Shown here piece after piece: positions 8,769 through 60,628 of a stretch of DNA of 64,000 bases. Each line of letters opens with the position of its first letter. The stretch's first letter is position 1. The notes beneath the pieces were generated by a model, which had not been told where the DNA came from, searched no databases, and worked only from the letters and a program-made list of their open reading frames with translations. A program made the position numbers and the translations under genes. The stretch is from the NCBI GenBank assembly GCA_964247055.1, contig OZ176051.1, positions 3,286,001-3,350,000 on the forward strand, written 5' to 3'. The DNA comes from Paragordius varius (lineage: Eukaryota > Animalia > Nematomorpha).

Positions 8769-9322
8769 ATTTTGATCCTGATATGCGGGGTTGTCAAATT
8801 GTTTTGCTAGCACCATTTCGCATTTTACTAAGGTATTTAATGGAACTCTGAATTTCATTATATTCATACTTTTTAGTGGTAGAGGAACTTGATAATATTT
8901 CTAACAATGCTTTAAGTTTTACAATTTCTTTTTTTTGATCTAGCATATAATATATTAAAACCATCTTCCTTTTCGATTTTTGTAATTAATTTTCGCAATG
9001 GTTCAACATATCGATTTAATTGTTTCAATTTAACGGCATACTCTAAATCTTCCGTGCATTTCTCCATGGGTGGAGTACTGGAAAAATAAGGGGATGATGA
9101 ATCCATCAAGCATTTGCTTTCATTTGAAGAAACTAATGTAAAAATTAGTCAACCTCGAATCATGGGTGAATTTGGATTCGCTGGCGTCCCTAAAACCATC
9201 ATATTTGGCGATAATCTATGGATAAATAGAAAAAACTACCCAATAGTTGTCATCGGTGATTGCTCGTATGGCCATTTACTAGTTCCAACTTGATTATAAT
9301 TAATTGGACTCTGCTTATAATT
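8769..9322 (-). CDS. MED15: Mediator subunit 15, central conserved region (partial model)
   Basis: Exons 9240-9322, 9154-9215, 8962-9132, 8870-8939, 8769-8847 joined by 24, 21, 22 and 22 nt GT-AG introns give TPANPNSP...EYAVKLKQLNRYVEPLRKLITKIEKEDDQKKEIVKLKALLEILSS...KVPLNTLVKCEMVL, matching MED15 YLDKLKQLSKYIEPLRRMI...CPLKTLQKCEIAL. 5' and 3' ends unresolved. Confidence 0.85.
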
Positions 9323-9394
9323 CTAATATTTTTTATATTTTAACTTGATTCCATATCATAATTTATATCTATTGTTCACAGGAATGAATGCATT

Positions 9395-9477
9395 GGTAGC
9401 GTGGCCGAGTGGTCTAAGGCGCTGGTTTTAGGCACCAGTCTATTTTATAGGCGAGGGTTCGAATCCCTCCGCTGCCA
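9395..9477 (+). tRNA. tRNA-Leu (anticodon TAG)
   Basis: GGTAGCGTGGCCGAGTGGTCTAAGGCG...CTGGT-TTTAGGC-ACCAG, long variable arm CTAT-TTT-ATAG, GGTTCGAATCC, acceptor end GCTGCCA, followed by a T-run terminator. Confidence 0.97.
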
Positions 9478-9552
9478 GTTTTTTATATTATTTTTATTAA
9501 TATGTAGTTTTTATATAAATTATTTTTGTCGTTTAAACAAAACATTCTAGAG

Positions 9553-12210: not shown

Positions 12211-15200
12211 ATGATAACATACAAAAAATTACATCCAAAAATGCGTAAAACATATTCTAGACGGGATTTTTACTCTCGAAAACGTTCTTCTTTAAATGAC
12301 TTATTGCCACCCTGGCAAAGAAATGTTTCAGAAAAAGATTTATCTTTAGCCAAATGCAATAGTTTTACGACAACGTTACCCTTTTCGGATCTTAGCAGTG
12401 GAGATTTAAAAACTCCGAGTGCTAAAAATGATGTTGATATAGGGAAGAAACTAAACGAAGTTAGGGAAAAGGTTCATAAGCTACCAGAAAAAGGTGCCAA
12501 ATTTTTCCAGAGTGTTGAGTTATTATCACGTAAAGTTTTGCCCCTCAAAAAAATATCTTCCTTTGAAAGTGATTCCAAAAACAAAGACGCCACTCATCAA
12601 GACTTGGCAAAAAATAGCATAGATGATGCAGGTCAAAATCGTTCGCTTGATATTGAGGAAAGTGATGATATAAATCACACACGATCCTTGCTGGGTGAAA
12701 TAAAATTATCAATTTTCTACGATATTTTACATCAACAATTGCATGTAAAAGTTATCCGGGCTGAACATTTACGCAAAACACAAAGCAGATATAAAAAAAT
12801 GATTGAAAACATAAAAGCCTCTTTCAATTACGAATTGTTAGTTTATAATTTTGTAAACAAATCGTCCTTAAATTCGGATGATGAAAATACATCAGATACC
12901 CCTAAAGATTCTTTATATTCACTTTCTGACTCAAAAAACTTAAGTGCGGACGATGATAATGCACCTATAGAAAACTATCCAAACCCCTTCATTAAGATTA
13001 TAATCCAATGGCCGAGTGGCAAATTTAAACAGAAAAGCAAGTGCCCAGAAAAATTTAAACACACTCAAAATCCTGTATTCGGGGAGGAGTTCGTTTTTAA
13101 ACCACTATCCATAAATGAAATTAACGACAGCCAATTAATAATCATGATAATGGACAAAATAACTTCTTGGAAGGACAATGTTATCGGAGAAGTTGTAATT
13201 CCACTTCACGCAAATTCCTTCATGTACGAAAAAAGGTTTTGGAGAGAATTGACTCCTTTAACCATTAAAGAAGTATGTGTGCTTGATGTTGTAAGATATA
13301 GCATAGAATATAAGTTTTTTTAAATTTTTTCACATATTAAATTCTTTATTTTGACTTAAAAACTATAATACTTATTTGATCACCAAATTCATCAAGATCC
13401 AAAGTGAGATAGAGGATTCGTTCTTTCTATGTCGAGATCGCGCCTTTATAAAAAAGGAAAAAGAGAAACTTAACTGTGTGCAAATTAAAACAATTTAACA
13501 ATGCTGTCAGTTTTATGAAAAATGAAAAGTTTATAGTTTTACAAAATATAAAGCGTTAACATTAAAAGTTCAAAAATTATAACATTGTGACACCTTAAAA
13601 GTTTATATTTGACTCGGATGAAATGGGTTATTTAGTTTTGAACATAAAAAGTTAAGAACTTTATGTGATAGCTAAACATTTTCAGACAAAACTGATTATT
13701 TGTTATTTTTTCACATTTTTTTACCCCAATAAAAAAATTTACGAAATTCTCTTAAATGCATTTTCAAAAAATGTGATTTTTGCATATTAGACGCTTCACT
13801 TTATAAACGTCGAATTTGAAACACAAGCTTACAAATTTATGTTTTTTCCATCATTTGATTGCAAAGTTTTTAATTCATAAATCTAAATGAAAATTGGAAA
13901 AACAATATTCCAATGTACAGATCATTTATTAAGTTTTAAATTTTCTAGGTTGTATATGCGTAACAAATATAAAAAATGAATTAGAAATGTTTAAACACAG
14001 TGTCCACAAAAACCTGATAAAATATATATTTTGATGGGAAAATGTATTATAATGGTGCTTTTGGTTGGCTTTTACGAGTGATTTTAGAGAGTTATTTACA
14101 CTTTTGTGGTAAATTGTCCATATCGGAAATAGGCAAAATATGCGCACATTAATTAATTTTTTTGGTGAAAGTTAGAGGTTTCATTCCAAAAAATATCACT
14201 AAAATATATTAACTACATATAAAAAGCTAAATATTTTTTTTAATTTTTTTAATTTTTAGATGTGGGCTCCGAAAGTCCCAAATTTTATTGCTCTTTTAAA
14301 AAAGGCTGGTCCTCTTAAAATAAAGCAAAAATGCCGAGATTGCGCGATAAAAAATTTAAATATCTGCATAAATTTTGACATCAACTATTTAAAAAAATGC
14401 ATACTTTATTTAAAAAAAATTAATTTTAGGCGAAAATATGTTGAAGCATACTTAATATTATTTTAATTTATGATGGAAACATTTTAAAACGCTTTAAATT
14501 AAAAAAAATGTTAATAAATGATATATTCGATAGCCAAAAGTTTCAGGATAATGAATATTAAAATAATATATGCGGTTGAATTACTAGAAAAAAGTTATTT
14601 CAATTACTCTGTTATTAGCCAAAATCAAATCGCATATTTATCGCCTATTAGGTCAAATATAAATACAATAGATAAAAACGCGTCAACTAAATTTTATTTT
14701 TTTAAATATACCAGAAGGATAAATTAAACTCAAAATATTATCAATAAAAATTTTACATTTTTCCGAGAGTCTAAGAAAGACTTACTATACCATTTGCACT
14801 TCAAGAGTGTCCTTGAAAACTTCAAGTTGGTCCTTGAACAGTTCAAGTTGGTCCTTGAACAATTCAAGTTGGTCCTTGAACAATTCAAGGTGGTCGGTCC
14901 CTGAACAGTTCAAGTTGGTCCTTAAACAATTCAAGTTGGTCCTTGAACACTTCAAGTTGGTCCTTAAAATTTATAAATTTTGATTTAACCATAATTTTTG
15001 CATTTATTTTAATTTTATTATTTATTAACCTATTTTCTTTATTTATTATATATTTATTCATTTGAATATAAAATTTTTTATTGAAAAACCACTTTTTTGT
15101 TTCAAACTATTTTTTTTCAATTAAACAAAATTATTGACTTTTAAATGTTATTAATAAAAAATTTTAATTAATAACCCAGAAAACTTATATTATCTTTCAT

Positions 15201-18200
15201 TTCGTTTTAAAATCTTATAAATATCCAATATTTTAATAAATTAATAAAGATATGCGGTTTCTCAAAGATTAAAAGTTGATATCGATTTAAAATTTATGTT
15301 AAATGATAGAAAATAGGTTAAAAACAATAAAATAGATGAATTATTTACGATTTGATCGATAAAAGTTAAAACAAAAAAATCAAACGACCAACTTGAAGTA
15401 AGGACCAACTTGAAATGTTCAAGGACCAACTTGAAATGTTCAAGGACCAACTTGAACTGTTCAAGGACCAACTTGAACTGTTCAAGGACCAACTTGAAAT
15501 GTTCGAGGACCAACTTGAAGTGTTCAAGGACACTCTTGAAGTGCAAATGGTATATAATATAAGCGAAAAAATCCCACTTTGGCGTCAAATTTGAATGATA
15601 AAATCTTGTTAATATGCGGTAAAAGTTTATTTTTATTATAACCATATGTTAACTCAATATATAGAGTTTGCCCAATATATTGCCTTCAAAAAATTAAGCC
15701 TTAAATAAAAATGAAACTTTTTTGATGATTTACGCCAAAGCGGAAGCTGCGTTTAATTTTTACAAAACATTCAATATATATACGTTGTGCAAAAAAGAGG
15801 GTCATTTTGATTTAACGAAATTTTTTTTCATGAGATAGCTTATGGCCAGCGTATTCATTTGCCGCAAAAATTTTTATTTGATGACAACCTAGTTTTTGAA
15901 ATATTGAGAGAAAATCGAAGTCGGACAAAAAGTGAAAATTAAAGATAATTCAAAAAATAATAATAAAATTTTAAATATTATGGTTTATTATCATGAGATA
16001 TTTTCAATATATAAATAGCCTTAAATCATATAGTTTGGGTTTCTATAAAATTTCAGGTCAAAAGATGGCGTTTTTCTTTTATCGCACTTAAAAGACAAAA
16101 TAAATTTAATGAAACTATATTAAAATATTTTTTTTAAATATTTACTACCTAAACTCACTATTAAAATTTTAACATTCATATTTTATTCAGGAAAATAAAG
16201 TTCTATATCAAAATAAAACCAAAAATATTGTTTTTTATTTTTGCATTTTTTGTCATCTGGTTTATGAGGGTATAACAATTTTAGACTGTTTTATTTTGGA
16301 TTCTCACATAATAGGGATTAATACGTAAATAATTTATGCAAAATAGGATTTAAAAGTAGTGGAATATCAACCAAAAAATCCTTAAATTTCCTCTAACAAG
16401 TCTGTTTTATGACAAATTAATAGTTGTATTGGGATTTGTACGGATTGTTGGTTGATAATTCACTAATTTTCAATTCTATTTTGCATAAATTATATACTTA
16501 ATAATTCCTAATCATGTGAGAATCCAAAAAACAGAATAAAATTTTTATACACTCATAAACCAGATGACAAAAAAATGCAAAAATAAAAAACAATATTTTT
16601 GGTTTTATTTTGATATAGAAGTTTATTTTAAGATTTTAATAGTGAATTTAGGTAGTAAATAATTAAAAAAAATTATTTTAATATAGTTTCAAAAAAAATT
16701 GTCTTTTAAGTGTGTGTTAAAAGAAAAACGCCATTTCTTGAGCTGAAATTTTATAGAAACCCTAACTATATGATTTTATGCTATTTATATATTATATATC
16801 CTAAAATGATGATAACCATAGTATCTTAAATTTTATCATTGTTTTTTGAATTATCCCTAATTATCCTTAATTTTCACTTTTTGTCTGATTTCGATTTTCT
16901 CTCAATATTTCAAAAACTAGGTTGTCAACAAATAAAAAATTTTGCGACAAATTAATACACTGGCTATAGGCTATCTCATCAAAAAAAAAATTTTCGTCAA
17001 AAATTTTTTTGCACACAGTGTATATACATATATATATATTATAAGTACCTTTTCCAAATTCGATGCAGAAAGAAGATCATCATCTCAGTATATTTTAGGG
17101 AATTTTTTCCCAAAATCTTGATTATATATTTTTGGCGCCATTTTAGCTTTTAATACCGGCTTTAAGGCATAGAAACTCTCCAAATCAAAAAAACTGAGTC
17201 GATAGATCCTTTTTTCTGCATCGAATTGTTTGAAAAAGGTATTTATCATTTTTAAAGTGGATGTTTTGTAAAAAAATATGCGCAGCTTCTGCATTGGTGC
17301 AAATTAAAAAAAAATATTTTTTAATTAAGGTTAATTTTTTTAAAAGCGAAAATTAAATCTTTTACAGCATATTAACAAGTTTTAATCATTCAAATTTGAC
17401 GCCAAGGTGCTATTTTTTTGTTTTACTTGTACTTTCCAAGACCCTCCTGTATGAAAAATCTTGATAGATATTATTTAGCGTTTAGAATTATCCTTATGAT
17501 ATATAAACAAATGAAATTTAGTTGACGCGTTTTCATTAATTGTATAAATGCGATTTTTTGATGGCTAATAACAGAAAAATTAAATTAACTTTTTTTAGTA
17601 TTTTAACCGCATATATTATTTTGATTTTCATTATCCTGAAACTTTTATCTCTCGAATATATAATTCATTAACTTTTATTTTTAATCCCCATTTTTGCCAC
17701 AGTGTAAAAACACTTCTATATAACTCGATGATGACATTTTATCACTTCAAAATTCAAATTTAAAAGTTTGTTTGCTAAAACATTTTGGCGAATTTTTTTA
17801 TATAAAAAACAATATTTATTACTTAATTTTGAACACGAAGTAGTATTTTATTCCATATTCTGAGGCAATAGAAATGTTCAGCATCGACTATAAGAAAAAG
17901 TGTTTTATGGTATTTTAAAGCGTTTATAAACCTTTTTCATATGACTCAAAAGAAGTACGGTTACACAAAATTTAGCTAAAAATTAAATTTTTGAAAAAAG
18001 GCATTTTTTATTAATATTTTTAGTTGATATCAAAATTAGCATATATTTATTATTAAGGCGCAATCTTGGCATTTTTGTGTAAATTTAAAATAGTAACCCT
18101 TTATTCAAGAACAAAAAAATCAGACTTTCGGAGCCCAAATCTAAAAAATAAAATTTTTTAAAATATATAACTTTTTTATGTAGTTTATGATATATTTTAG

Positions 18201-30538: not shown

Positions 30539-30579
<41 letters not shown>

Positions 30580-34847: not shown

Positions 34848-37739
34848 ATGCAAAATTCAAATTTGTCCAAAAAATTTCTGATTAAAGATCTTTTATCCAC
34901 ATCCGGAAATGGGGAAAGTAAGAATATGGATTTATTAATCAATTTCAGTACGAAACATTCTTACGATCCACACAAATATAATATAAAAAATTTACATAAT
35001 AATTTTGAATATTTCCAATATTATTGCTGCATAAATCCCTATTATTTTTGGATTCTTAATGCATGGTCCGCAAATATATCATTGGAATCGAATTCTCTCC
35101 AAGCTGGTAAACCGGGAGCTCAGATAACTAAAACTCAGAATTATAAAGGACCAAAGTTGAAAAAATATTTAGAAATACCAAAAAGTGAATTCGAAAGTTT
35201 TGAATAATTTTATTAAACTTGTGATATATATATACATGATTAACTCTTCATTAAAATATTATATCTCGTAATGTTACAGTTAATTTAACAACTAAATTTT
35301 GGTCTATTCATAAGCAGTCAGATTCTTCATTAAAACGATGGCCAATAAAAAACATCCCAAATTATGATTCAGGACGCCTAAAATAGGCAAAAATTATTTT
35401 TTAAACTGAATTCTTTACCGATTTCAGAGTTCGATCTGGAGTAAAAAATGATATGGCATATTCTCGCATTTTAAAACAACTAATAAATTACATAAAATCG
35501 TAAATAGGTCTTTGGAACTAAAATAATATAAGAACGTTTATAAATATTAATTATAAAAAATGAAAGACTGGCCAGTCACTAAGAGAGTTTGATTAAACCA
35601 ATACTAATGGTTTAGACATATAAATCCCCACCGAATGATATGTAGTTAATTTCACAATTTAATTTACGTTTCAATTTAAACTATAGGAAAGCGTGAAGTT
35701 CAACAAAAAAAGATTCGACAGTCCTACAATTCAAGACAATTGGAGGTTTTAGAAAGAGAATTCAAAGTAACAAATTTTATTATATTATCGTAGAAAGAAA
35801 AATATTTGACAACATCCAAAAGAAAATTATTATCAATTACACTCAATTTAACCGAATGTCAAATTAAAACTTGGTTCCAAAATAGAAGGTTTGTAAATTT
35901 TAATCACATAAATATTTTCTAAATAAAGGATTATTTTTGATTGACAGATTGGAAAATAAGCATTATAGGAGTATCTAATATTATAATTTTGCCTACAAAA
36001 AACACAAAAATATGAATATATTATAGTTTTTATAATTGAAGCATAATGTAATATAGGGTTATATGATGTTTTGGTAAATATGGGAAATTCTTACAGAAAA
36101 GACCCAACAAACTTATTCCAGATATAGTCATAATTACAGTTTGAGAAGACGTGGTGAATAGGCAGACGATTAATTTGATCATTTTGTGAATTTAACATTA
36201 AGCTACAAACACCCACAATTTGAGTTGACCAAAAATTAGTGTCTTACTTTATCATTCAGTATGTCGAGAAAAAGAACATTTGCGATACCCAATGCCATCA
36301 GAAGAAAAAGGCTGTTGAAAGTCATTGTTAGCTGGTGAATAAATATGGTATACATGCTCTATTGATTAAAATACGTGAAACATGATTTCGAGAGTAAAAA
36401 ATTGTGATTTCATGCGAAAGACAGTGGGTGCTCTGGTGGATCTATTAACTGGGAAGGCGATCAAGTGCAAGTGTTATTAAAGCCCCAGCTCAAACTCAAT
36501 ACCAACTTGCAGAAGTATTGCTTGTATCACAAAAAACAATCAGCAGACGCTAAGTAATGGGAAAGATAAACTCGGTAAATGGGTCTCACACAATTCGATT
36601 CAAAGTCAAATCGACAATTGTAAAGTGACTTGTGAAAATCTTGTTTTAACGTTAAAAAAATCATTTTCGCATCGCGGGCGTTAAGAAGTGGCTTAAAATG
36701 TTTAACCGAAGCGGAAAAATCGTGGCTTTACCTTGCCAAGCCGGTAATCGAAACCAGGGTCAAATCATTTCTGTGTCTGCTGAGACCAAAGCGGCGGTTC
36801 CCATTTGTTCACGCCCCACCAAATTAAACATCACAATGATTTGCAAAAAAGTGATACTTAATTGCCCCTCACGTTTGAGTTTTAATATTGTCCGCATTAT
36901 TGTCTATGCGTCTTCGGATAGTATTATTTATGGAATCCGCTTTTAGGGATGAATTTTATCCTTACCCAAGAATTGAATCCGATTTAAGAATATCGGGTTT
37001 AATAAAAGTCTCTCCGATGATGTAGGGTTTCAGGTTTTTGGCTATCAATATGAAATTTGTTAACCTATTTATTCTGGCAAGATTTATAGAAAAGTTAAAC
37101 GGAATGTAGTTTAGACTCTACACATTATTTGTTTTTTTAATAGGAAAACTTATTTTTAAATATGTTTGTTCTTTAGGTCAGCACATTCATTATTTATTTT
37201 GCTAGTTTTTAATTTAATAAGTTTATATCTTATCATTCAACAAATTGGATTTAAATCGAAATCTTAAGTCGGTTCCTATTTTTTTCTAAAAAATCTAGCA
37301 TACAATTGAATAAAAAGATCAAAACCCAAAAAACCTTATTCATCCTTTGCTTAAGTTCTCATTACTGCGCTAAAGATAGTAAATATAGGTAATGATATGT
37401 TGGAGTGTATAACTATTAAATATTTAATTTGAGGGTTATTACAAGTTTGATCTACTTAATTTAAATAAAATGAATGGGATATATTGAAACTAAATCTGTT
37501 TGGTAGGCTAAAGAAATGGATTTAACGAATAAGCGTTTTCAGTGTATTTACAATGCATTAATTGGCATTTTGTTATATCAATAAAACTGGTCAAATGAAT
37601 AAAATATTAAATATTTTAACCTAGGCCATGAATCAACACTATTATAAAAATTATATTGTATTGCATATGTAGAACAAAATGGAAGAAACAGACCATAGCT
37701 CATTTGAAACGAAAATTCAAAACACAACAAACACCCTAA
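34848..37739 (+). CDS. NKL-subclass homeobox protein, Abox/ceh-19-like
   Basis: Exons 34848-35106, 35687-35766, 35794-35888, 37673-37739; N-terminal eh1 motif FLIKDLL; homeodomain KKIRQSYNSRQLEVLEREFKKEKYLTTSKRKLLSITLNLTECQIKTWFQNRRTKWKKQ. Confidence 0.9.
36140..36830 (+). mobile_element. Second decayed Mos1-like mariner copy, in homeobox intron 3
   Basis: Collinear with 26300-26940 (CACAATTTGAGTT.ACCAAAA, AAACTCGGTAAATGGG, TTGTAAAGTGACT, CCAAAGCGG). Confidence 0.8.
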
Positions 37740-37980: not shown

Positions 37981-40529
37981 TTTAATTAATAATATCATCT
38001 ATAAACTTTTTAGGCCATGCTAATCCTCATTTCATTTTTCGATATAGCCTTATTTTTAATATTGTTTAAAATTGGATTGTGAGCGATATTCATATTTAGC
38101 CAAAAATAAAACAACAAACAATTATATATATTGTCAAAAAGGTTTAGGTTATTATAGGGTGCGGATGGGGTCAACTGTATTTATTGAATTTCCTTTTAAT
38201 ATTTTAATCCAAGAATTTCTTATATTCATATATGAAAAAGTGATAATTAAATCTAAATATCATGAAAATATTAAACAATGAAAGTAAGATATTTTTTCCA
38301 TTTTACATCTTTAAAAATATTTTTCCTTATTACATTCAATGTGCCAAAGAATGTATCTTTAAATTTAAAGCGTAGTTTTTGTCTCTTTGATCCATAACGC
38401 TTTAAGTATATACCCCAAATTAGAGTGTCAATAATATTTCAATTTAATAAATCAAATGTATCGTTAATGATGTTCACTTCTTATTTACATTTGATAATAC
38501 TTATTCATATTCTTAATTTTTTGATACTTTATGACACATAAATTTTTTAGCTTAAATACCGTTATGTGAACTTATTTTAAAATAAATATATTAACACGTA
38601 GTAATATTCTAAAATCTAAAATTTAGACAGCCTTAAAAGTCCAATTATACAGCTAATTTATATCAATACACTACAACAAATTTTTCTGCCATTCAAGTTT
38701 TTTGCATTTTCTGATATTTAGTATCATTTTAACAGTAAATCTGAAATAAAAATTATAACTCGTTGGAAGAATTTTGTATAATTTGATTTTTTTGATTATG
38801 CGCCCTCTTTATCAAAATTTTACTAAAAAATGTTTTTCTTTGAAAATATACAAGTAATGCCCATTTCTAATATATCATTCGAAAGAGTATTCAAAAATCT
38901 ATAAAATGCATACTAATATGTATTACATCGACAGTTAATATTGGACACAAAGAGCGACAAACGCGCGAAGCGAGAGCATTTTTTTTAATTATTATATTTT
39001 TAAAACTAATGGATGAAAATAGCTCAAACTTTGTTAAGATGGTGAAGAATGTCTAAAAAAGATAACACAAGAAAGCTTTTTTGATTAAAACGTTTTTATT
39101 GCTTTTATGTCACTCAAAACAGCATTTTTAAGTTTTTTGTTTTTTAAATAATTACCATCTCATCAATACTAATTTATTTTCTTTACGAAGCTGATAATTT
39201 CGAAATTTTAAAGATAAAAACAAAGTTTAAGGTATTTTTGATCTTTTATAGCCATTATGTAATAAATTTACAGTTATAACTATGCATTTTAGTATCCACT
39301 AGGTAAAATATTTATGATAATAATAATTTTTATTAAAAAAGCTAACCAAAAGCTTTTTCAAACATTTTTTTTAATTAAATACTAATATAACCCTAATAGT
39401 TATATTAAAATAATTTATATGATTTTCAAATTAGTTTGCCTGTGAAAATTCTTGACTTATTTAAGGATTGAAAATTTCGACCATTTAAATCCAAATAACT
39501 TTTACATCCGATTGATTTAAATGACTTACTACCATTTAAAAGATGCAGTTTTTTGCGCTCTTTCGAATGATATAAAATACATGGCTTCATATCTAAAACT
39601 TTTAATTTTCGAAATTTCGAGTTTAATGTTAAATCGGGGCCAAAAATTATCGATAAACTCTAATATAAAAAAATTCTTGCATGCTAGACTAATTTTCTTT
39701 TCAGATATACTAATTATGTACTTTAATGAAATAATTTTAAATTTACAAGAATGGCAGTTAAAAAAAGTTAAAATTTGTTGTCTAGTGATATTATTCAAAA
39801 TTTACCTGCAAAATATGATTAAAAGCATTTATTACTTAATCTTTATGAAATGTTAATTATTTTACAAAATTCTTGGTGGGATCAAGATTTTTTCAATTTC
39901 AAACTCTCTTTGCCTTAAGATTCAAATTGGAATAAATTGACGCCACACCATATAATAGATATTAAATAAACTCTGATCAAAATTATATAAATAAGATATA
40001 ATATCTAAAATGCTCCATATCAAACTACTTAGACGCCATTTTTACAACATTTTTGCAAAATATCGTGTTTATTGTAACACTAAAATTAAATTTAATTTTT
40101 TATTAAATTACATCTAACAATATATAAACAGAAAAAATGGTTCATTTTTTATAATTTTGATATTTAGTTACACATGTCAGTCGGTTAAATTTTTACCATC
40201 AGGTTTTTTATGCATACAATATAATATAAAGTTTTTTGAAATCTTTTTTAATAGATCGGTATATCAATGTTAGTGCAAATTTGCAATGTTTTCAATTGCA
40301 TATTTTTTAAAGGCGTGTTGAATCTAAGAACTGAAATAAATACGTTATAAAGTGTGGATATATATGCTTAATAAACAATTAAAATTTTTAAATTTAATAT
40401 CCCAAACGATGTATATCAGAATTCTATATATCTCTAGGTCGTCCTTTTAAAAAGATAATGATATGTTAAGCAGAAGTTATTTCATCAATAATATGGTAGG
40501 TTATAAAATTAACTTTAATGAATATATTT

Positions 40530-40973
40530 TTAAAAAAGATTTAAATTAAAAATTCCTAGTGCATAAAATAATAGATCCAGTAAAATATATTACCGGCTTT
40601 GTAAGCGAAATCAGTCAAACGTACTAATAGGCTATGTTTTTTCTTGCATAACCCAGTAATGTCTGGATTGAGTACGCGTCCATTTTTATCAAGAAACTGA
40701 GAAATTATTAAAACATCCTGAAATAATTAAATAATAACTGTGTATTGCAAATTTATATTTAATGCACAAAGGGAGCATGATCTATTAATAATGTCTGACT
40801 TTAATTCATTTTCATTTGATAAAATGCCTTCAATCTAGAATTTATAATATATGCAAACAAGTATAGAGTTATTTGTCTCCGTTTTAACAACTATAAAATA
40901 AAAAACATTAGTCACTTTTTTTTAAAAAATTAGTTGCAGATGAATGAAATTTTCTGATATTTGCTACCCACAT
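40530..40973 (-). CDS. MRPS18A: Mitochondrial ribosomal protein bS18a/mL66
   Basis: Exons 40916-40973, 40859-40890, 40739-40834, 40594-40717, 40530-40555; introns 25, 24, 21, 38 nt. MWVANIRKFHSSATNFLKKIVKTETNNSILIEG...CSLCALNINLQYTDVLIISQFLDKNGRVLNPDITGLCKKKH...AYKAGI matches MRPS18A CPIC...DVLLLSQF...ITGLC...AHRAGL. Last exon uncertain. Absent from the ORF track. Confidence 0.88.
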
Positions 40974-40995
40974 GTTCAAAATATGATACAAATCA

Positions 40996-43900
40996 ATGAA
41001 TGTTATTAAGACCCCGAAAAATTTCAAAAATTTAAATGTTAAAGTCCTTAAAAATGAGACATTTACTCAAAAATTACAAAATTCCCATAATAAAGTTATA
41101 TCTTGCAAGTTAATTTTATTTATAAAGCAGAAATGCAAGATTAAATTATTATTTTAATCAAAATACGAAATATCAAACTTTACTTGCATCTCATGGTTGG
41201 AGAAACAATAAATCCAAAGGTGATAATTTTAAAATTATTCAAAATAAACAAGTTTTAAATATTATAAAACAGTTTTCTTATTTTGATCTTTCGAATATCG
41301 GCTTTAATCCGAACAAATATTGTTTTGAGGATAATGGCCATATTCTACAGGAAAAATTTGGTGAGAACATTTTAATTAAAATTGATCCTCGACTAATTAA
41401 TATTTTAAAGAAAAATGGAATTAAATCACCTACTATGTGCCAGGTCTGTCTTAATATTAATTTTAGACATTAGGAATTTCCAATATTTTAACTAAACAAA
41501 ACACCCTTCTAACCGCAGAAACAGGTTTTACTCAAAATTTACCTCAGGTTCCGGAAAGACTTTTTCATATTTACTCCCTATTTTGCACCAAAATCTGATT
41601 TATAAAAAGACATGGGAACAAGCCTGTCATCGTTATTTAAAAGAAAATCATTTAACATTGCAAAATATTTTAGATAACAATATTATAGTTCCTTATTGTT
41701 TAATATTAGTTCCCACTAAAGAACTCTGCCATCAACTCACGGTAAATTTTAAAGATAATGTATTTTTATAAAATATTGATGTGAGGCAAAGATCTGTATG
41801 ATTTAAATTGTTAAAACCGAGCTATTCCCGTAATAAATCAAAAAATTATTGCCTATTTATTAATATTATTAAATGCAATTTAAAACACGTAAGATAACTA
41901 ATTTGGTGATCTGGATACCTATACCATAATTTATCTTTAATTTTTTGTATATATATATATATATATATCAACTTTTTGTAATAGATATAACTGAATTTAA
42001 ATAATTTTTTTATTCTTAATGTGTGCTATTTTTAAGCTTGGTTTAGTGTTCAGTTTAATATTTTGGAGCCTTTAAGTTAGTTTTTTGTTTTATCATATAA
42101 ATCAACTATGTTGAGCATAGTCCCTAGGTCATAAATTTTAAGTTTCATATTTAAAAACTGAATATTTTATGCACAGAGTATTACCGCTTTAAGCCTAAAA
42201 AACATGTAATTAAAAACAAAATACTCTTTGTACTAGCTATCATTTATATATGTCAATATAATCACATTTAAATTAAAAAAGAGTATATTACATCGTGCAA
42301 ACATTCAGTGTTGTTTCTGGGTAAAATTATAAAAATTAAAAAATTGGAATCCATCTATTTTATTTTTAATTTACAAAAAAATATATTCCCTAAAATCAAT
42401 TTTTTTTCTATATATTTAGCGAACTTTAGAGCTATTTAGGCCAACGCTTCATTTAAATACGATGGAATATGTGTTTGGAAATATCAAGACTCAATATTCA
42501 CCATCAGAGTCTGTGAATGGGCCAGATGTTAAAACTCCGTTTATAGACGTGTGTGTTAGCATTCCCAATCACATTACCCAATCCTTAGTAAATGTCCAAT
42601 CTCTGAAGGCAAGAGATAATATCAATGATACAAATAGAGAATATATCAAAAGTAATTATTACACACAGTGTGATTATCAATATATTGCTAGCTAGCATAT
42701 GCAGCAAAGGTCATTATTAGTGTTTTATAATAATAATTTTGTTCGCTTTTTCTTGCTATCCAATAATAATTGTATATGTTATCTGGCTATATTTAATCAA
42801 TTAGCAATATATGTTTATTCATAATTTAACTTAAGGGCGACAAATGGATTGCTTTTTGTGTAATTTGTGGATTGATATTCTTTGTATAAAATATATGCGA
42901 TTTTTAATGATATAAAAGATGTGGATATATATCAGTCTTGGAAATAAAAGTATGCAAATTGTAAAATTGTTTTTTAAATTTTAATTAGAAACATACTAAA
43001 TCTTAAACCTATATAATATTTATTAGCCTCGAATTGTTTTGAGTCTATCTTAATGTAATTTTGCATATTTTATAACGGAAAATTAGTTCAATAAAAAGAA
43101 ATTTTAAAAATTTTAATTTCTAAAATTGAATCTGTTTCATAAGCAAAAATTAGTTTATCAAATTAAAGGGTTTATAAATGTCATATGCCATTTTTTATAT
43201 ACTATTATTAAAAATTTTATTAGTTTTTGCAATTAATTTACAAATTTTAATTAGGGAATTTTAAAATTTGTTCTAGTTAATTTCTATTTTATTGCATTAT
43301 GCGTTTTTTAGAGAAATTAACTAATTCTAAATGTTGCACTCTGTATGTTTATTACCTATACTTTCTTTTTTCGCACATATTACCTCATAAAAAAGTTTTA
43401 AAAACATCGTTACTATTTAGATTAAATACTTAAAACAACTTTACATTTGAAAATAAAAATATATTTTGTATTCATGTTGAATTGCGTAAATTAATTATAA
43501 ATAAATTAAAAGTAAATTAGTAATGTATTCATCATTGATAAATTTCAATTTTCAAGAAAGCCAAGATCTACAGTCTATCATATATTCATTCAATTTGATT
43601 TGGTATTTATTTTTTTACTTTTTTCAATGTTAGACAACACGAAAAAATTTGACATAAGCCTAACTCAACATATCGTCTTTGATGAAATGGATACCTTATT
43701 TGATGATTCTTTCCGGCCAGCCACACAAACAATATTGGACCAAACTAGTTTATTTTTATATTTATATTTTCAAAATTTCATAATATTAAATTTTTATAAT
43801 TTTAAATTAGAAACCGAAAGCCAATTGATATTAGTGGGAGCTACTAAACCCAAATATTTGAACGAAATTTTGAATTATGAACTAAAAGTAAATTTTTCGA

Positions 43901-46900
43901 CCTTGTTTTGCTATTAAATTATCGCTTGCAATTTATAATAACTATCGACTCATTACAATAATTTAATATATTTTTCATTGTGGTTTAAGATTTAATTGGT
44001 TATCTACCATTAAACATTAACAGTCAAATTTTATTCTTTGTGTGGATAATTTAAGCTATTACTTTTTTAATATTTCGTTTGTGAGGATGTTATGTTAAAA
44101 AGCGTAATTGATAAAATTAAAATATTCTTTGATCTATAATTTTTCCTCAAGAATACCGTATCTTGATATATAGTAAAAATTTGAAATTGTACAGACAAAA
44201 TATAAAACTAAATGACACATATTTTTTTTAAAATAGTAAACTCTTTTTTTCAAACCAATATCTTCCCGACATATACTATTTGAAAACAATTTTAACTTAT
44301 ATGATTGAATGTTTTACATCTTTTTTCCCAAAGTAAAATTCAAATTTATAAAATAATATAGTTGTTTTTAAAAATATATATTTGTCTTTTAATTTTTACC
44401 TTTTGCCCATATATTTTTAATTTTTACTATATAAATATCTGTATAATTCAAGAATGGGAACGATAAAGATTTTGAAACACAATCTTCCCCACATGACTCA
44501 AAAAGTATATATTGCGTCCAAACGAAAAATGTTCACAAGGTGTTACCTCATGTCGTTCAAAAGTTTATCCGATTACTTAAACATGAAAAAATGGCTTATG
44601 TTACAAAGGAATTACAAAAGGGTCTCATACCCCCAAAATCGAAAGAACAACATAAATCCATGTCTATAGGTTTAATATCTATTTTACCATTTATTTTATG
44701 ATTGTTTTTATATTTGTGGAAAAAATTTTATTTGGTGATTCTATTAATATATGATTTCTTTAAGTCTTGTTAAAAAATATTGATTAAATTATTTTCGTGT
44801 TAGCCGACAAGCAAAGCCAAAATAAAATTGAATATCCCAAACTACCCATTACCCTGGTATTTTGTCAATCCTATGAAATCTGTGAAAAGGTTAAAGCTAG
44901 TTTATTAAATAATCACATAATGTTTCAATATTATTATAAAAAAATTGGTATTAAAATTAATATAAATAATAAATTGTAAGAACAAAGTTTTAATAAATCC
45001 TCTCATAATTTGGAATCGATTGTTTAAGGCATATACGATTCTATTGTGGTTTGATCTAATTTAATTCAGATTTTTTTATACTTTTATTGTTTTTTTACCT
45101 AATTTTGAATCATTAACAATGTAAGTTTGGTTTTTTATATGTGGGAATAAAATTTGCCTATAATAAATTAAGATTGCCATGATATTTTCATACACCATGC
45201 TTAAATTTATTTATTTCATTTTTTACAGAATTGTTAATTATAACCGTTCTAAGGTTTTAATACCGGTTGTTTATAATAAAAACTTAGCCATGTTTTTTTA
45301 ACGGAATCTTTTACGATTAGATTTTAATGAATGTCATGTCTACCAATCATATTTAAGAAAACGATTATATTTCAACTGTTTTTATAGATCTACCAATCTT
45401 TGAAAAATGACTTGAAGGGTTGGACTTATTTTGATAATGAAAAACAAAGTTTTACGGATATTGCAGATTGCATTGCTTGCTTTCACGGTAAATTGGATTC
45501 TCATGAAAGGCAAATCATTTATCAGCGCTTTTTCCGATTTTTTCCTCATGGTATGTAAAAAATTAAAGCTGCTGAATAAGAAATATCAATGCTCTTTATG
45601 AAATAATATTTTCCCGCAAAAGTTTTTAAAAAAATTTTTTTTCAAAAATATTTATTACGGCAGATTTTTTTTATTTTTGAGGTTTGTAATTTATCCATTT
45701 TTAAAATTAAGATTAAACATACTTATAAAAATATGTCACCCTTGAAAATAGAATGCGGAAATATCTGCGAAAATAGCATTTAAAAGGTTTTTAAAAATAT
45801 ATTGTGCTATATTTAATATTTTAATCCGTTTATTTTTAATATAAAAAATTATAATGCCTGCTGTTTTTTATAAAAATCATTATGGATTTTTTTCTTTCCT
45901 GTAAAAATATTTTATTTTGGAGTTATTGAAGTTTTAAATCAAAATTGAAACTAAAATTTCGCACTCATTAATATAAATACTAAATTGAGTAGACAAATTA
46001 TGTTAAAAATTATAATTAAAATTTCAGATGAAACAGTTATGATAGGGCACATATAGTATTTATTTATGCGGATAAAATTAAAATTGCGTTATTCAAAAAA
46101 ATTCGTATGCTTTTTGTAAGTTTCAGCATATTAGTCATTTCGTAATATTGTGTGTTTTCGGTAATTTATTAATTTCTCACTTAGATGTAACTAACATTTA
46201 TAGAAATGCAATTAAAATGTAAATATTATATATTTTATAATTTATTAAAATATTTTAAACTTTTTGGAGATAAAGATGGTATCGCCAATAAAAACCATTC
46301 TCCAATCAATATTTTAATCTCAACGGATTTGATGTCACGTGGTCTAGATACAATTCATGTGGATAGAGTCATAAATTACGATTTCCCAAAATATCTTTCG
46401 GATTACATCCATAGGGTTGGTAGAGTTGGACGATGTAAAAGTCCCACTCAATTGGATGATGCAGGTTAAAAATTATTTTATTAAAAAAAATAATCTCATC
46501 TCTTTTTATAAAAATGGTATACTGAAACCCGATTTGAGATTTTTGGATTTCGGGTTATGTTTATGAAAACATTGCGATTGCAAACGAAGGCAAATTAAGT
46601 TATTAATCCAAATCAGACCATATTTAACAATTATATTAGACCTTAGTATTTATTTGTGAATAAGACTTTTCATTGGATTGTAAAATTTTTACCCATAAAT
46701 CTTATTTGATAAATGATATTATAAATCATTTAGATACTATTTCCCGAAATGCCCCTAAAGATGCAAATAACATTGTGATAAACTTAATCAGTACAAAACA
46801 TGAAGCAGAACTCGTACAGCAAATTGAAGTATGCCCTACTAATTTACCTTTTAAATACAATTGACAATAACAAAATATGTTTTGCATATCAAAAACCATT

Positions 46901-47317: not shown

Positions 47318-47430
47318 AAATTTATTTTATTAAATAATAAAGGTAAACCATGTATTTGCCATAAAATATAATATTTAATTAATATAAAAAACATTTACTA
47401 TCATCAATATAAAATATATTTTAATAATAT

Positions 47431-55297: not shown

Positions 55298-55993
55298 ATG
55301 GATGATTTTTTTATACTTCTGAGGAAAGACGTGCGTTTACTTATGAATGATTTTTTCAAGGAAATGAATATAAGGTTCGTAACTTTCTATCGCATATGGT
55401 GTGATTTAAAATTTTACAAGATTATTGAAAGCCGAACCAATCAAAAAGAAAAAGCTAACATTATTTTGGAATGTTTTACGATTGCTCGTGATTTTTTAAT
55501 TCAAACAAATTTGCAATCGCAAATAGGCGGATTATATTTTGCTTATTGTTGTTATAACACTCAAAACCAAGCTCCCTATCTCAAGCTTAGGATAACCTTG
55601 AATCACATTCAATTGCTTCGACCATTTATTGAAAAATTATTAGCCCAAAAACATTATGACACACTTTATATATTATATCAAATGATTTATCAACATGCTA
55701 TAGATTTTGTCTATCATGATACAGAAATACATTTTAAATGCCACAAAAAATATAAACCTGATAATATTCAAGCTTCTGTAGATTTCGCGAAAATAACCCA
55801 ATCCTTTGTCCCTCTAATAACAGAATTGCAAAATCTTCAAAGTATACATAAATCCCATTACAAAAATACAGTTGAAACTTTCAAACTTTTTCCAGGAACT
55901 TCATATATTCAATTATTTAATGAGAATTTTGTGACACAATGTTTGGATTTTATGCGTACTTCGTTAGTAGCGATTGATGAAGAGAAAGAATAA
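55298..55993 (+). CDS. SNAPC1: snRNA-activating protein complex subunit 1 (SNAP43), single exon
   Basis: DVRLLMNDF...IRFVTFYRIWCDLKF...QIGGLYFAYCCYNTQ...KLRITL...QKHYDTLYIL...AIDF aligns with the SNAP43 domain (VRFEDF..W..MKF...RVGALYLLYGLYNTQ...KIRVAL...QHFDAAYI). Confidence 0.9.
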   Translation: MDDFFILLRKDVRLLMNDFFKEMNIRFVTFYRIWCDLKFYKIIESRTNQKEKANIILECFTIARDFLIQTNLQSQIGGLYFAYCCYNTQNQAPYLKLRITLNHIQLLRPFIEKLLAQKHYDTLYILYQMIYQHAIDFVYHDTEIHFKCHKKYKPDNIQASVDFAKITQSFVPLITELQNLQSIHKSHYKNTVETFKLFPGTSYIQLFNENFVTQCLDFMRTSLVAIDEEKE

Positions 55994-57655
55994 ATTAATC
56001 TATAATTAAAATAAACGTCACATTATTTGCTATAATATTTTATACCAGGTCATTTTTATGTTATTGACTTTTGTTATCATTATTACATTTTTTTCAAGAA
56101 AATTTTTATAAATTTTCACTCTAATTGATGATGGCTGTCCACAGTGCGAAAAGTTGGTAAGTTAGTACTTTCTGTTCAGGCTTACAAGTCATTTAAGAAT
56201 ATTTAATTATCGTAAAACTATCGTACATTAAGCTAAATAAAATTATTTTGGTGATGTTTTATTCCGGAAAAATATCATTGAAATACATCCTAAACTACAT
56301 ATAAAGTCAAATCAATGTTTATATTAAATTTTATATGGATGTGAATTCGAACGTTTTGAATTTTTGACTTCCTTTTAAATAGGTCATTTTGTAAACGCAA
56401 AATCCCGAGATACGATCATAATTAATATATGCTTGCATTATTAATTTAAACATGCTGAAACATTGCAAAATGTTTAACATATTATTGCTGTAAAATTTTA
56501 TCACCCCAGATTTTTTATAAGATTAACCCGTCAAATTTAAATCTTTAAATTTAAAATACAATATTTTGATTAGTATCCTTTAATAGAAATTTTTAACATC
56601 ATATTTATATGGCAAAGTGTTTTTTATTAGGGCACAAGGGAAAAGTTTTTCTTTAATGGTAGTCCAAAACCAAAATCATCACGAGAATCTGATGCATCAG
56701 AATATATATTTGATACGGTTGTGAAATTTGTGTATATTTATGAAGTTTAAGAATCGATTTAATGCACTTTAATAATGGATGTTATTTCTTTATAAATGCG
56801 GCAAGCGAAGAGCCATTTTTTTACTAAACTCATCTACATTTCAAAAATGTTAAATTTTGGCCTTGAAGATAACATTTTTTGTGTGACCTACAAATATTAA
56901 AAAATAATAAAATTATGGTATTATTGTTTTTGGACTCATGATTGCTAAAAATGCCCTCCCCATTGACAGTTTTATCTAAAAAACTGAGATCCTAAACCTA
57001 AACAGTCGGAAAAATTCATGATCAAGTTGATCTAATTAGTATGAAACAGCTGTGTATTTAAATAGGTTCATATAGGATAGTGGAACTACTGTGTTCACGT
57101 TTAATGTCGAATCAACTGAATTCGTTAGATCCCCACAACCATAAAAAACGGAGTTAATTCACAACTTTTTACGTTAAAAAACTGAAGAACTACGGTCATC
57201 CATTGCATAACCAGCAAAAAGCCTAAAAAAGAAACATTCAGCATCAACAGGTCTATAAAAAGATAGATATATAATTATTTATCGCTGAAAATACATTTGT
57301 TTTTAAAAAAGCATGTTAAACATGTTTTCAATATTTACCATTTTACTAAAAATAATATTACTTTATTATAAATATAATATTGATCCAGTTTATTAGCAAA
57401 AAATAGAATTATCTACATAATCATATATTAACACATACAATCTAGTTAAAGAAATATCACGGTGCAAATACAATATTTTTAATTAAGATATAAAAAAAAA
57501 TACAAAATAAGTAAAGTTAGAATGACACATCTTTAAGGAATAAGAATAGAATGTGTTGGTGTTCGTTTATCCAAGTATGGCCCAAAAGTGGTAAAAATAA
57601 TTTGTGAAAATGGGTGCTTTTTAACCGCAACTATAACCGTGTCGATATTACTTAA

Positions 57656-60628
57656 TTAATAACGCGCCGCTGTTCCATAAGTGGAGTCACCTGAGGAGGT
57701 GGCAGCCATCCCTGTAGCAATGTTCCAACCAGCTTGTCTAACTGAAGGATTGCTCATAAATCCAGTTGCAAACTCTTGTTGAGCTTTGGCAAAACTTGCG
57801 CCCGTAGATCGATACATTCTATGGACCTATGTCATATATTGAAATCAAAAAGAGAAAACAATATAAAAAACATTAAGAAAGATATTTTATCAAAAAAATA
57901 ACCTTATACTTTTTCAACCTTGGTTCGATTGGTAAACTTAAAATTAAAATGAAAATTGGTAACAGACCCAATTATTGTAATACAATTGTCATCATTTAGC
58001 TTGCATAAAAAATCAAGGTTTGAAAAAGTATGGCCATCTTTATTACAAAATTTTATTCTTTCAGTTTTGTTTTATCTTTAAAATTTTAATTTTACTATAA
58101 CTAATAAGTATTTTGATCATGGCAGTGCATAAACCCTCAACATTGAAGTTTTACCATGATCTTTTGAAATAAATGGTGCCAATTTAAAGTACCATTTTTT
58201 TATTCACGACATATTTTTAAATCAAACATTTTCATTCGAATGCAATGTTCGTCATTTATTAACAAAATTTTATCGTCTGTAAGTCAAATTTTATCAATAA
58301 AGGAACTGTTGTTTTGTGCTAGAACGATATTTATTGGGCAGACAGGGGTGTTAAAGAATTTTTAGGTATTTTGCCAATCATTGCTTATTATTTTAATAAA
58401 AGCTAAGCTTACTTTGAGCAAAAGAAGAAAGCCCATGGTAGCTAAGGTGGTGAATCCAATTGCAACTATAAACATAAAAAAGGCGGCGGGTTTATTCATT
58501 CTCATGTGACCCAAAGCATTGACCCATCCACTAATATCGATTAATAAATTAATTTTGTTTATTTATCATTCATTCCAGTTTAAAGATTTGTGAAATAGAT
58601 AGTTATTAAAACTAAATTATGGCACATATCAAGGGGAAAAACGTTTTAAAAAGACAATAAATAATACCATGTCCCGAAATTGTCGATTCCAATAGCTTGA
58701 ATAACGTTGATGCAAAATTGACAAAAAAACACAAAGAAAAACAGGAAAAAGTTGAAAGAACTGTCGCTTCTATAAATATATCAAGTAATTAAAATGTTCA
58801 AATTATTTGATTGTTAAAAAGGTTACAGAGATAAATAAATAATTATCTTAAACCTAAAAGCCTTGTAAGCCGGTCTAAACCAACATAAAAAGGAACACGG
58901 CGTAAACATTATGAGCCAAAGGATCGAAAGTCCAAACAGTGTAACACTTCCCCCCGTAATGAAAGCAGTAAAACTGGCCAACATATTAAGGACTATGGTG
59001 AGAACGTATCCTAAAACAAAAGTATAAAATTCATGATAAAATTAAATGGTTTTTATTGGTTTTAATGAAATGTAAAATATTGTATTTAATGACTTTCAAG
59101 CAAAATTAAATACAATGAATGTATCAATTTTATTTCTTTAGCTAAAATAGCAGGAAATAAATCAGGAACGGATTTGTAAAACCAAAATCATTAAGTTTTT
59201 TTTAACAATCTTTTAAAAACCAAAGAAAAGACTAAAGCCGGAACGGCAATTTCTATCGATTTTATTAAATTTAATTTCAATGTTTAAGATATCCTTGTTT
59301 ATTAATATCTTGTCTATTTGTTTTAATCATAAAGCATATTATTAAAAATATACCACGGTTCTGACCGTTTTTGAACCCGAATACGGGCTGCAAAAGATAA
59401 TTGTTTCAATTTAAATTTTTCCAATGTTAAACTTTGTTATTAGTTTTCTATTTGTTAAAACCATAAAAGTATAATTGAAATTGAAAATGTATTAAAACTT
59501 GGGTAAACAAAAAAATAATTTGACCTAAAAACCAAAACTCGAGACAAAATATTCGGTTCCGATCCCAGTTATACTATTTCATAAACTATAGTTTACTAAA
59601 ATATAATGTTTCATAATATAAAAACATATTTGACTAGTATGGTAATTGACGATACTGCGCATCTATTAAAATTTTAGACGACAAAAATTTTTTTTAGTGG
59701 GCAAATTGGTTTATGATGTTGTTAATTATCATATTTTTAAATTATTCATATTTCAGAATAAATTTTCATGAGATAATTTATACCAAAAAACAGTTTATAA
59801 TAAATAAAATTTAACTTTGTATTCCAATAAACACAAAAGAGAAGTTTGATTTAAAAAAAATAAATTTTTAGCATTTTTTCCAAATATAACATGGAGAATT
59901 TTACCTATTCCATACTTATATATGAAAAATATGTATGCATATTTTTTATAATTTAAATTAATGATTAAGATACTACTCAGATATTGTATAAAATCAAAAT
60001 GAAAAGATACAAATCTACCAAAAACATTGGATATTTATATTTAATAAGAAAAAACTTACCAAGCCAAACGTAATATAAAGTTCGCACAATTTTTTGAAAT
60101 TCAAGAGGAATTTCTACTTCTATATCTTGATAAAAACATGGTTGTAATGGCACAAACTTTGGTAAAGGTGGCCAATTGTTTTGACGTCCTACAATAATTA
60201 AAATTATACCAGTAATGCCTTGTTGCCGTAATTCCCTTTCTTTTCTTTCTAGTTCTGCAGCTTTTTTCTCAAGTTCCTATATTTTTTATCACTATAATAT
60301 TATACCTCCTGTCTTTTTTGGAGCTCTTTTTGTGTTTGTATCATTTTTTGTTGTGTTTGATCATTAGATATTACATCATTTTTAATATATCCAGATACTT
60401 GTGGATTAACTATGTAAAATAATTAAAATACTTGGTTGGGTTGGCATATTAATTATCGTATTCTAAATTGATTAATAATATACTTGGCTTTCGAATGGAT
60501 TAACAAAAGATATAGAATCCAATGATTGCGACGGTTGGGCTGTTTCATTTGGCTTGGGATCCTAAAATAATTTATCAATTATAAACTGCAAAAGGATTTA
60601 AATCCGAATCATCGTTTAAGCTAGACAT
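57656..60628 (-). CDS. SCAMP: Secretory carrier-associated membrane protein
   Basis: Exons 60587-60628, 60484-60561, 60432-60462, 60306-60409, 60210-60276, 60060-60188, 58854-59010, 58668-58769, 58413-58530, 57656-57826. NPF repeats, [15 protein letters not shown] coil, [47 protein letters not shown]. Confidence 0.95.

Follow-up and report, generated by a model that had tools for sequence, protein, structure and literature searches.

We examined a 64,000-nucleotide (nt) stretch of contig OZ176051.1 from the horsehair worm Paragordius varius (positions 3,286,001 to 3,350,000; hereafter the window), in which five unrelated genes, MED15, MRPS18A, DDX28, a homeobox gene and SCAMP, are interrupted by 16 GT-AG segments of 21-29 nt. 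These segments, here called micro-introns, are very probably genuine spliceosomal introns that mark the lower length limit in this worm, a gordiid related to Gordionus but separate from it; most would be ancient introns that have shrunk, and ordinary U2-type splicing would remove them. A first-pass annotation of the same DNA had listed all 16, together with one ambiguous segment of DDX28 (41252-41272), and an exact string search placed every one of them at the size given there and within the same outer limits, 8848 and 60586.

The micro-introns form a narrow length class below 30 nt (four of 21 nt, four of 22 nt, two each of 23, 24 and 25 nt, and single examples of 27 and 29 nt), with a mode at 21-22 nt and a sharp lower edge at 21; the next verified sizes in the window are 63 and 84 nt. 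Roughly half of the introns in the window measure from 63 nt to more than 1 kilobase (kb) and stand alongside the micro-introns. Such coexistence, which had been claimed previously, is evident in SCAMP, where introns of 25, 21, 22, 29 and 21 nt are followed by introns of 1049, 84, 137 and 586 nt. The surrounding DNA is AT-rich, with 24-34% G+C in 2-kb bins and about 27% overall. Nine of the 16 micro-introns are not multiples of three in length, and six of the seven that are carry an in-frame stop in three-frame views, the exception being the fifth intron of SCAMP (60189-60209). Retention would lead to a frameshift or premature stop for 15 of the 16, in agreement with the earlier claim that all but one would disrupt the reading frame. 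After splicing, uninterrupted frames extend over 225 codons in DDX28, 154 in MED15, 149 at the N-terminus of SCAMP, about 100 in MRPS18A and 58 in the homeobox gene.

Comparison of gene structure among orthologues covers SCAMP alone of the five genes. Proteins from Gordionus, the annelid Owenia and the water flea Daphnia were mapped exactly onto their genomic loci, and the four SCAMP proteins were aligned. Micro-intron 1 occupies the same column and phase as introns in Gordionus (45 nt), Owenia (896 nt) and Daphnia (176 nt), and the Gordionus protein reads unbroken DLNPFADPKP across the junction. The column and phase of micro-intron 4 are those of a 1221-nt intron in Gordionus and a 1309-nt intron in Owenia, with a 60-nt Daphnia intron four columns off, while micro-intron 5 coincides in both respects with introns of Gordionus (5452 nt), Owenia (270 nt) and Daphnia (67 nt). 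Retaining micro-intron 5 would add seven residues that are absent from the Gordionus protein. Micro-intron 2 lies in an indel-rich region, 4-8 columns from phase-0 introns of Gordionus (4011 nt), Owenia (823 nt) and Daphnia (60 nt).

Ancestral positions are accordingly occupied by four of the five SCAMP micro-introns, three of which match in both column and phase while the fourth lies a few columns away, and the four longer introns of the gene also stand at positions common to Gordionus, Owenia and Daphnia. For micro-intron 3 and the 31-nt exon upstream of it there is no counterpart in the SCAMP genes of these three animals; this intron is possibly a lineage-specific gain in a low-complexity region, or one that was lost in the other lineages. 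Judged by position and phase, the other four SCAMP micro-introns are ancient bilaterian introns held at minimal size in this species.

The same gene bears on the relationships of the worm. When one SCAMP exon was compared with 1.84 billion cluster representatives in a full HMMER scan, the top match was protein XP_065313065.1 of Gordionus sp. m RMFG-2023 (88% identity, 98.6 bits), followed by a match of 74.6 bits (58%). At full length, the spliced protein is 69% identical to that of Gordionus, with Trichinella next at 47%, and eight intron positions are common to the window and Gordionus. On the evidence of this one gene, the closest protein and gene structure are those of a nematomorph, and the window derives from a nematomorph other than Gordionus. 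The 24-34% G+C profile of the window fits the 26.93% reported for the Gordionus genome. Among other candidate sources, Dicyema japonicum is rejected for its G+C content (36.7% versus 27%) and because of the Gordionus match, and Henneguya because it has lost its mitochondrial genome, whereas the mitoribosome genes of the window are intact. With the Gordionus SCAMP as query, no other nematomorph SCAMP was found in the protein collection, and the 10-kb flanks of the Gordionus gene contain no called gene and no similarity to the genes that neighbor SCAMP in the window.

Protein homology provides a second line of evidence. In MRPS18A, the gene for mitoribosomal protein mL66, the spliced sequence LKK/IVKTETNNSIL/IEGIL (slashes mark junctions) aligns in a search of solved structures to residues 35-100 of mammalian mL66 with no gap at either the 25-nt or the 24-nt junction. 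The third junction, LQYT/DVLIISQF in the S18 domain, aligns to KYTYEDVLLLSQF of mL66, and the exon 3′ of this intron begins at position 9 of the Ribosomal_S18 profile. Among solved structures the spliced peptide matches only mitoribosomal mL66/MRPS18A; it found no candidate in the protein collection.

DDX28, a mitoribosome assembly helicase, is interrupted both directly after its Q motif and within motif I. Removing the latter micro-intron restores AETGSGKT, with the downstream exon beginning at DEAD profile position 25, and the spliced peptide from PTMCQ through SGKT is gap-free against residues 379-432 of DDX46 and against human DDX28. A later exon carrying motifs V-VI also has DDX28 as its best match (E-value 9e-15). 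Exon 2 contains no in-frame ATG before the Q motif, and micro-intron 1 joins this exon to the sole upstream start, at 40996. Between the DEAD and SAT motifs, removal of a 63-nt segment that is absent from the first-pass annotation restores the usual 27-residue spacing. The ambiguous segment in exon 2, alone among the 28 decoys located in exons, has an intron-like interior (6% G+C); it also has an A at position -7 and ranks 7th among 828 decoys of similar form (see below), and its sequence leans towards an intron.

MRPS18A and DDX28 are arranged head to head, with start codons 22 nt apart (40973-40971 on the minus strand and 40996-40998 on the plus strand), so that the 5′ ends of the two genes must overlap or share a minimal bidirectional promoter.

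In MED15, the spliced peptide aligns to residues 531-594 of human MED15 (E-value 1e-15) without a gap over both 22-nt junctions. The coordinates of the Med15_M profile agree, and the exon after the last micro-intron begins at profile position 53. The exon that precedes the homeobox micro-intron covers positions 1-20 of the Homeodomain profile, and the second residue of the exon that follows it corresponds to position 22, from where the profile runs to 51; removing the 27 nt therefore restores the exact spacing.

Three further features accompany MED15. Directly before its first defined exon lies another 22-nt GT...TAG segment (9323-9344, minus strand), which scores 5.2 bits, among the best decoys, and whose splicing would join a five-codon ATG exon (MIWNQ, 9345-9359) to the MED15 frame. 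If it is spliced, the gene would have five micro-introns, which would be introns 1-5 of a transcript beginning at this point and lacking the KIX-domain region; alternatively, the AG of this segment is the acceptor of a long upstream intron. A leucine transfer RNA (tRNA) gene with anticodon TAG (60 bits versus Rfam) lies at 9394-9478 on the plus strand, about 35 nt upstream of the possible MED15 start and on the opposite strand. Downstream of the MED15 exons and on the same strand, frames resembling those of a long interspersed nuclear element (LINE) extend over 5585-7604 (minus strand) and include RVT_1, a PHD-like zinc finger and an endonuclease-like N-terminal part.

Protein is thus restored exactly, by gap-free alignment or contiguous profile positions, at eight junctions, to which the Gordionus protein adds four junctions of SCAMP. 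Homology and comparative gene structure together give strong support to 12 of the 16 micro-introns. The earlier assertion that removal restores conserved protein holds in all five genes, gap-free against human mL66/MRPS18A, DDX28/DDX46, MED15 and the Homeodomain profile; for SCAMP the comparison is with the Gordionus protein.

Table 1. Introns and related features of the five genes, with SCAMP intron lengths in four animals
Feature	Position	Strand	Length (nt)	Remarks
MED15 micro-intron	9216-9239	-	24	In frame with TAG stop; support from frame continuity
MED15 micro-intron	9133-9153	-	21	In frame with TGA stop; support from frame continuity; poorly conserved Ser/Pro-rich region
MED15 micro-intron	8940-8961	-	22	Junction KIEKED/DQKKE
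MED15 micro-intron	8848-8869	-	22	Junction TTKK/VPLNTL
Homeobox micro-intron	35767-35793	+	27	In frame with TAG stop
MRPS18A (mL66) micro-intron 1	40891-40915	-	25	
MRPS18A micro-intron 2	40835-40858	-	24	In frame with TAG stop; after 32-nt exon
MRPS18A micro-intron 3	40718-40738	-	21	In frame with TAA stop; inside S18 domain
DDX28 micro-intron 1	41109-41130	+	22	Support from reading frame
DDX28 ambiguous segment	41252-41272	+	21	Exon 2; in frame, stop-free
DDX28 micro-intron	41444-41466	+	23	Directly after Q motif (PTMCQ)
DDX28 micro-intron	41525-41547	+	23	Splits motif I (AETG/SGKT)
DDX28 intermediate intron	43748-43810	+	63	Very AT-rich GT...TAG; in frame, stop-free; between DEAD and SAT motifs
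SCAMP gene	57659-60628	-		10 exons, 332 amino acids; 69% identical over full length to Gordionus XP_065313065.1
SCAMP micro-intron 1	60562-60586	-	25	Phase 0; between ...DLNPFA and DPKP...
SCAMP micro-intron 2	60463-60483	-	21	Phase 0; in frame with TAA stop; needed for frame
SCAMP micro-intron 3	60410-60431	-	22	Phase 1; after 31-nt exon; frame needs removal to reach conserved QQKM..KRQE
SCAMP micro-intron 4	60277-60305	-	29	Phase 0; between KRQE and ELEKK
SCAMP micro-intron 5	60189-60209	-	21	Phase 1; in frame, stop-free
SCAMP longer intron	59011-60059	-	1049	
SCAMP longer intron	58770-58853	-	84	
SCAMP longer intron	58531-58667	-	137	
SCAMP longer intron	57827-58412	-	586	
SCAMP introns in order, window			25, 21, 22, 29, 21, 1049, 84, 137, 586	
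SCAMP introns in order, Gordionus			45, 4011, none, 1221, 5452, 230, 998, 434, 358	
SCAMP introns in order, Owenia			896, 823, none, 1309, 270, 4078, 7470, 2192, 272	
SCAMP introns in order, Daphnia			176, 60, none, 60, 67, 89, 94, 55, (79), 74	

The micro-introns share few fixed letters. All 16 start with GT and end in YAG, position -3 always being a pyrimidine, whereas positions +3 to +8 have only an A/T preference, with G at +5 in three of the 16, so the splice-site motifs are reduced. The earlier statement that GT and YAG alone are invariant is true as worded, but it overlooks further signal. To assess this signal we used the GT...YAG pairs of 21-29 nt that are common in the window (844 on both strands, or 6.6 per kb) as decoys. 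Micro-intron interiors are 52% T, 35% A and 12% G+C, versus 29% G+C in decoys. An A at position -7 is present in 13 of 16, compared with 35% of the 844 decoys (P = 2e-4) and 46% of AT-rich decoys (P = 0.004), and 12 of 16 contain the tetranucleotide TAAT, for which shuffled sequences give a mean of 7.3 (P = 0.014, n = 16). Leave-one-out log-odds scores place real introns at a median of +3.1 bits and decoys at a mean of -6.9, about 10 bits apart. Nevertheless, 303 of 828 decoys score above the weakest real micro-intron, and the signals found are therefore incomplete.

Most micro-introns would be ordinary ancient introns that in this lineage shrank to the floor; the genes that contain them also have introns of 63-1049 nt or longer. 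A normal U2-type spliceosome would recognize the short ones across the intron (intron definition), the length floor being exceptionally low. The recognition elements would be a minimal donor consisting of GU and then A or T, an intron body very rich in A and T, the preferred A at -7 as candidate branch point, and YAG. Between this candidate branch A and the 3′ splice site there would be 7 nt, and between it and the 5′ splice site 14-22 nt. RNAs that retain an intron would probably be removed by nonsense-mediated decay, which could act on unspliced RNA because 15 of the 16 give a frameshift or stop if retained. From these features we infer where branching occurs, how the introns are recognized and that unspliced RNA is degraded.

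A different possibility is that micro-introns are removed by a distinct pathway, either independent of U1 or of U2AF or with U1 and U2 binding in sequence, as in the ‘dual recognition mode’ proposed in the first-pass annotation. The candidate spacing speaks for such a pathway, as spliceosome structure indicates that U1 and U2 small nuclear ribonucleoproteins side by side occupy more than 14-22 nt upstream of the branch A and 7 nt downstream of it. The frequency of A at -7, found in two of five longer introns inspected by eye compared with 13 of 16 micro-introns, and the sharp lower edge of lengths at 21 point in the same direction. However, animal introns normally show a minimal-length peak with a long tail; what stands out here is only where that peak lies. 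Moreover, introns of 63 and 84 nt occur in the same genes, and the size classes may form one continuum with a floor. Weak donors, GT followed by A or T (GT+W), are also found in the long introns of Gordionus SCAMP and are therefore a trait of the lineage rather than a mark of the micro class. The same puzzle is posed by Paramecium, Dicyema and myxobolids, and myxozoans are reported to keep canonical U2 and U2AF components (PMC13644364). We consider a distinct pathway unlikely, and dual recognition is not needed to explain the data.

An unconventional 26-nt intron of the IRE1/XBP1 type was also tried as a model and rejected: it calls for paired stem-loops with CNG'CNGN loops at both cut sites, which cannot form in interiors that consist of 88% A+T and are nearly devoid of C and G.

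Several observations weigh against reading the 16 segments as ordinary spliceosomal introns. Frame restoration was evaluated with a dynamic program that finds the longest frame with up to five skipped GT...AG segments of 20-30 nt, run on twelve simulated 64-kb sequences from a second-order Markov model of the window. Simulated maxima reached about 130-200 codons when three skips were allowed and about 150-220 when five were, and DDX28, with 235 codons after three skips, is the sole real frame above every simulation. Frame restoration alone is thus weak and not significant, since random sequence does nearly as well, and the case must rest on homology and comparative gene structure. For four micro-introns (41109-41130, 9133-9153, 9216-9239 and 60410-60431), and in part for 60463-60483, the evidence comes down to frame continuity and intron-like sequence. 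The preference for A at -7 was obtained from 16 sequences with about a dozen positions inspected. Exons show no depletion of decoys of the same size, with 28 in the sense and 24 in the antisense direction. One of these, a 22-nt GT...TAG segment in DDX28 exon 4, which carries motif Ia (41688-41709, plus strand), resembles an intron, with a 17% G+C interior and an A at -7, yet its removal would break the frame. The detected signals thus incompletely explain the choice of real introns, and the spliceosome must reject this decoy through some further discriminating signal. The evidence as a whole consists of DNA and protein comparison, no spliced protein of this species having been found in the protein collection; we infer excision from RNA, for this window, on that basis.

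These points lend some substance to the idea that the loci are pseudogenes, or that some segments are translated and chance GT...AG pairs merely repair the frames. Random sequence does yield long frame chains once skips are allowed, decoys are abundant, and both 60189-60209 and 41252-41272 are in frame and stop-free. Chance would have to account, however, for five unrelated single-copy housekeeping or developmental genes, all repaired exactly to conserved residues and profile spacing, and 60189-60209 sits at an intron position of three other animals. As a general explanation this idea is very improbable; it is left as possible for 41252-41272 and, less so, for the five micro-introns with frame evidence.

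Assembly error, which had been named beforehand as something that would undo the intron reading, was examined with Logan contigs of four runs from two samples (two individuals), all of them DNA, placed on 40250-46249. The contigs are colinear through all seven MRPS18A and DDX28 segments, without an indel or a joined form (for example, 40565-41868 is gap-free), and depth is even over exons and introns in the four runs. The second sample, about 2% divergent in sequence, likewise has no indel at the micro-introns. The seven tested segments are intact in both samples, so that an assembly artefact is ruled out, and the same data argue against removal at the DNA level. The notion that the segments are cut from somatic DNA like ciliate internal eliminated sequences, or are insertions of assembly or sequencing, can draw on their resemblance in size to the 26-28 bp peak of Paramecium eliminated sequences and on programmed elimination in some nematodes, but it is largely refuted by the intact segments in all four runs, by GT...YAG rather than TA...TA boundaries in 16 of 16, and by four segments at or beside intron positions common across Bilateria, and retains a negligible probability. 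Ciliate-type internal eliminated sequences in particular were rejected for their missing TA boundaries and the presence of all seven tested segments in the four DNA runs.

The same runs reveal two features of a DDX28 intron. A contig of one run carries a 35-nt deletion (44992-45026), and depth is two to three times higher over 44250-44449 in all four runs, which suggests that this part of the intron is a dispersed repeat.

Elsewhere in the window are two intronless genes, SNAPC1, encoding snRNA-activating complex subunit 1 (E-value 1e-28; 55298-55990, plus strand), and a gene for a 370-amino-acid protein with a C-terminal C2 domain (12211-13320, plus strand). A word-indexed protein search found no relative of the single-exon SNAPC1. 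A 21-nt tandem repeat forms two inverted arrays of about seven copies each (14809-14965 and 15386-15531), about 420 nt apart, both of which are open in several frames (LEQFKLV-type peptides). Rfam and tRNA scans of the window gave the tRNA-Leu gene as their single result. The first-pass annotation had described the long introns as filled with transposable elements; self-BLAST of five of them gave no support for this, as none had a second copy within the window, although a comparison over 64 kb carries little information. The reverse-transcriptase frame lies downstream of the MED15 exons.

SCAMP opens with five micro-introns, and MRPS18A and DDX28 open with three each. This 5′ bias is no rule, because an argonaute gene in the window has at least three introns of about 100-900 nt, the first ones included. 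Micro-introns make up five of the nine SCAMP introns and all observed argonaute introns are longer, counts that apply to the window and not genome-wide.

More tentatively, and with the odds somewhat against the proposal as a whole, we suggest that minimal intron length was roughly halved, from about 45 to about 22 nt, after the split from the Gordionus lineage. Kilobase introns would have collapsed, preferentially near gene 5′ ends, and the branch point would have become fixed 7 nt from the 3′ splice site; part of the gene loss and low BUSCO scores of Nematomorpha would then be an annotation artefact. By default, STAR treats gaps shorter than 21 nt as deletions, and predictors of the AUGUSTUS type have a minimum intron of about 40 nt. 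With such minima MRPS18A, DDX28, MED15 and SCAMP would be mis-modelled or scored as missing, and micro-introns are likely to defeat standard gene finders. The preprint on the Gordionus genome, which used STAR and BRAKER, gives 26.93% G+C and a BUSCO completeness near 70% and does not mention introns. For Nematomorpha, claims that genes were lost (‘rampant loss of universal genes’) deserve re-examination, as does the BUSCO value near 70%.

In a survey of 51 animal genomes published in September 2026, introns below 30 nt were found only in Dicyema and in myxobolid cnidarians, namely Henneguya salminicola, Thelohanellus kitauei and Myxobolus rasmusseni (PMC13644364). About 30 nt is the limit usually quoted for animals, and the survey predicts further short-intron animal lineages (PMC13644364). 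The groups listed in the first-pass annotation, Paramecium, nucleomorphs and dicyemids, were correctly named, but the myxobolid Myxozoa were missed (PMC13644364). None of the papers that were searched reports such introns for Nematomorpha, and a comparative Nematomorpha preprint makes no mention of introns. If our reading is true, the horsehair worm would be the third independent animal lineage with introns below 30 nt and the first in Ecdysozoa.

Outside animals, Paramecium tetraurelia has introns of 20-34 nt (10.1101/2021.08.05.455221; PMC5014332). The window resembles it in length range, in weak signals and in the premature stop on retention, by which surveillance could police splicing. Paramecium, a ciliate, differs in that its introns are tiny almost without exception. 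Introns with lengths divisible by three are reported to be depleted there, whereas in the window sample they are undepleted (seven of 16).

Among animals, myxobolids share ultra-short introns, a parasitic way of life and, in at least one case, a repetitive genome (PMC13644364). They differ in being cnidarians rather than ecdysozoans and in a genome-wide median that is reported to be short, whereas roughly half of the introns in the window range from 63 nt to more than 1 kb; myxobolid and nematomorph micro-introns are of independent origin. Dicyema japonicum has a mean intron of 38 bp in a 67.5-Mb genome with 49% repeats and 36.7% G+C (PMC6736024). It, too, is a bilaterian parasite whose very short introns occupy conserved positions in a genome made up half of repeats, but it is a spiralian with 36.7% G+C versus about 27% here, and nearly all of its introns are short, while kilobase introns persist in the window.

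The minimal introns of nematodes and insects, with peaks at about 45-65 nt, resemble the micro-introns in that a narrow class of short introns is accompanied by a long tail within the same genes, and in having a T-rich 3′ end followed by YAG, comparable to the nematode UUUUCAG. The difference lies in the peak, which in the window is at about 22 nt and thus below the animal limit of about 30 nt (PMC13644364).

A further comparison is with Gordionus (GCA_954871325.2). Micro-introns and kilobase introns in the same genes, together with Gordionus counterparts of 45 nt to 5 kb, make the control of minimal length testable by comparison, and if the floor was halved after the split from Gordionus, the two genera would be a natural experiment for the spliceosome change that sets minimal intron length. 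The SCAMP gene of Gordionus, a member of the same phylum, shares eight intron positions and phases, GT+W donors and a low G+C content (27.7% at the locus) with that of the window. At the positions of the micro-introns, by contrast, it has introns of 45, 4011, 1221 and 5452 nt, and where its shortest intron is 45 nt, the floor in the window is about half of that length.

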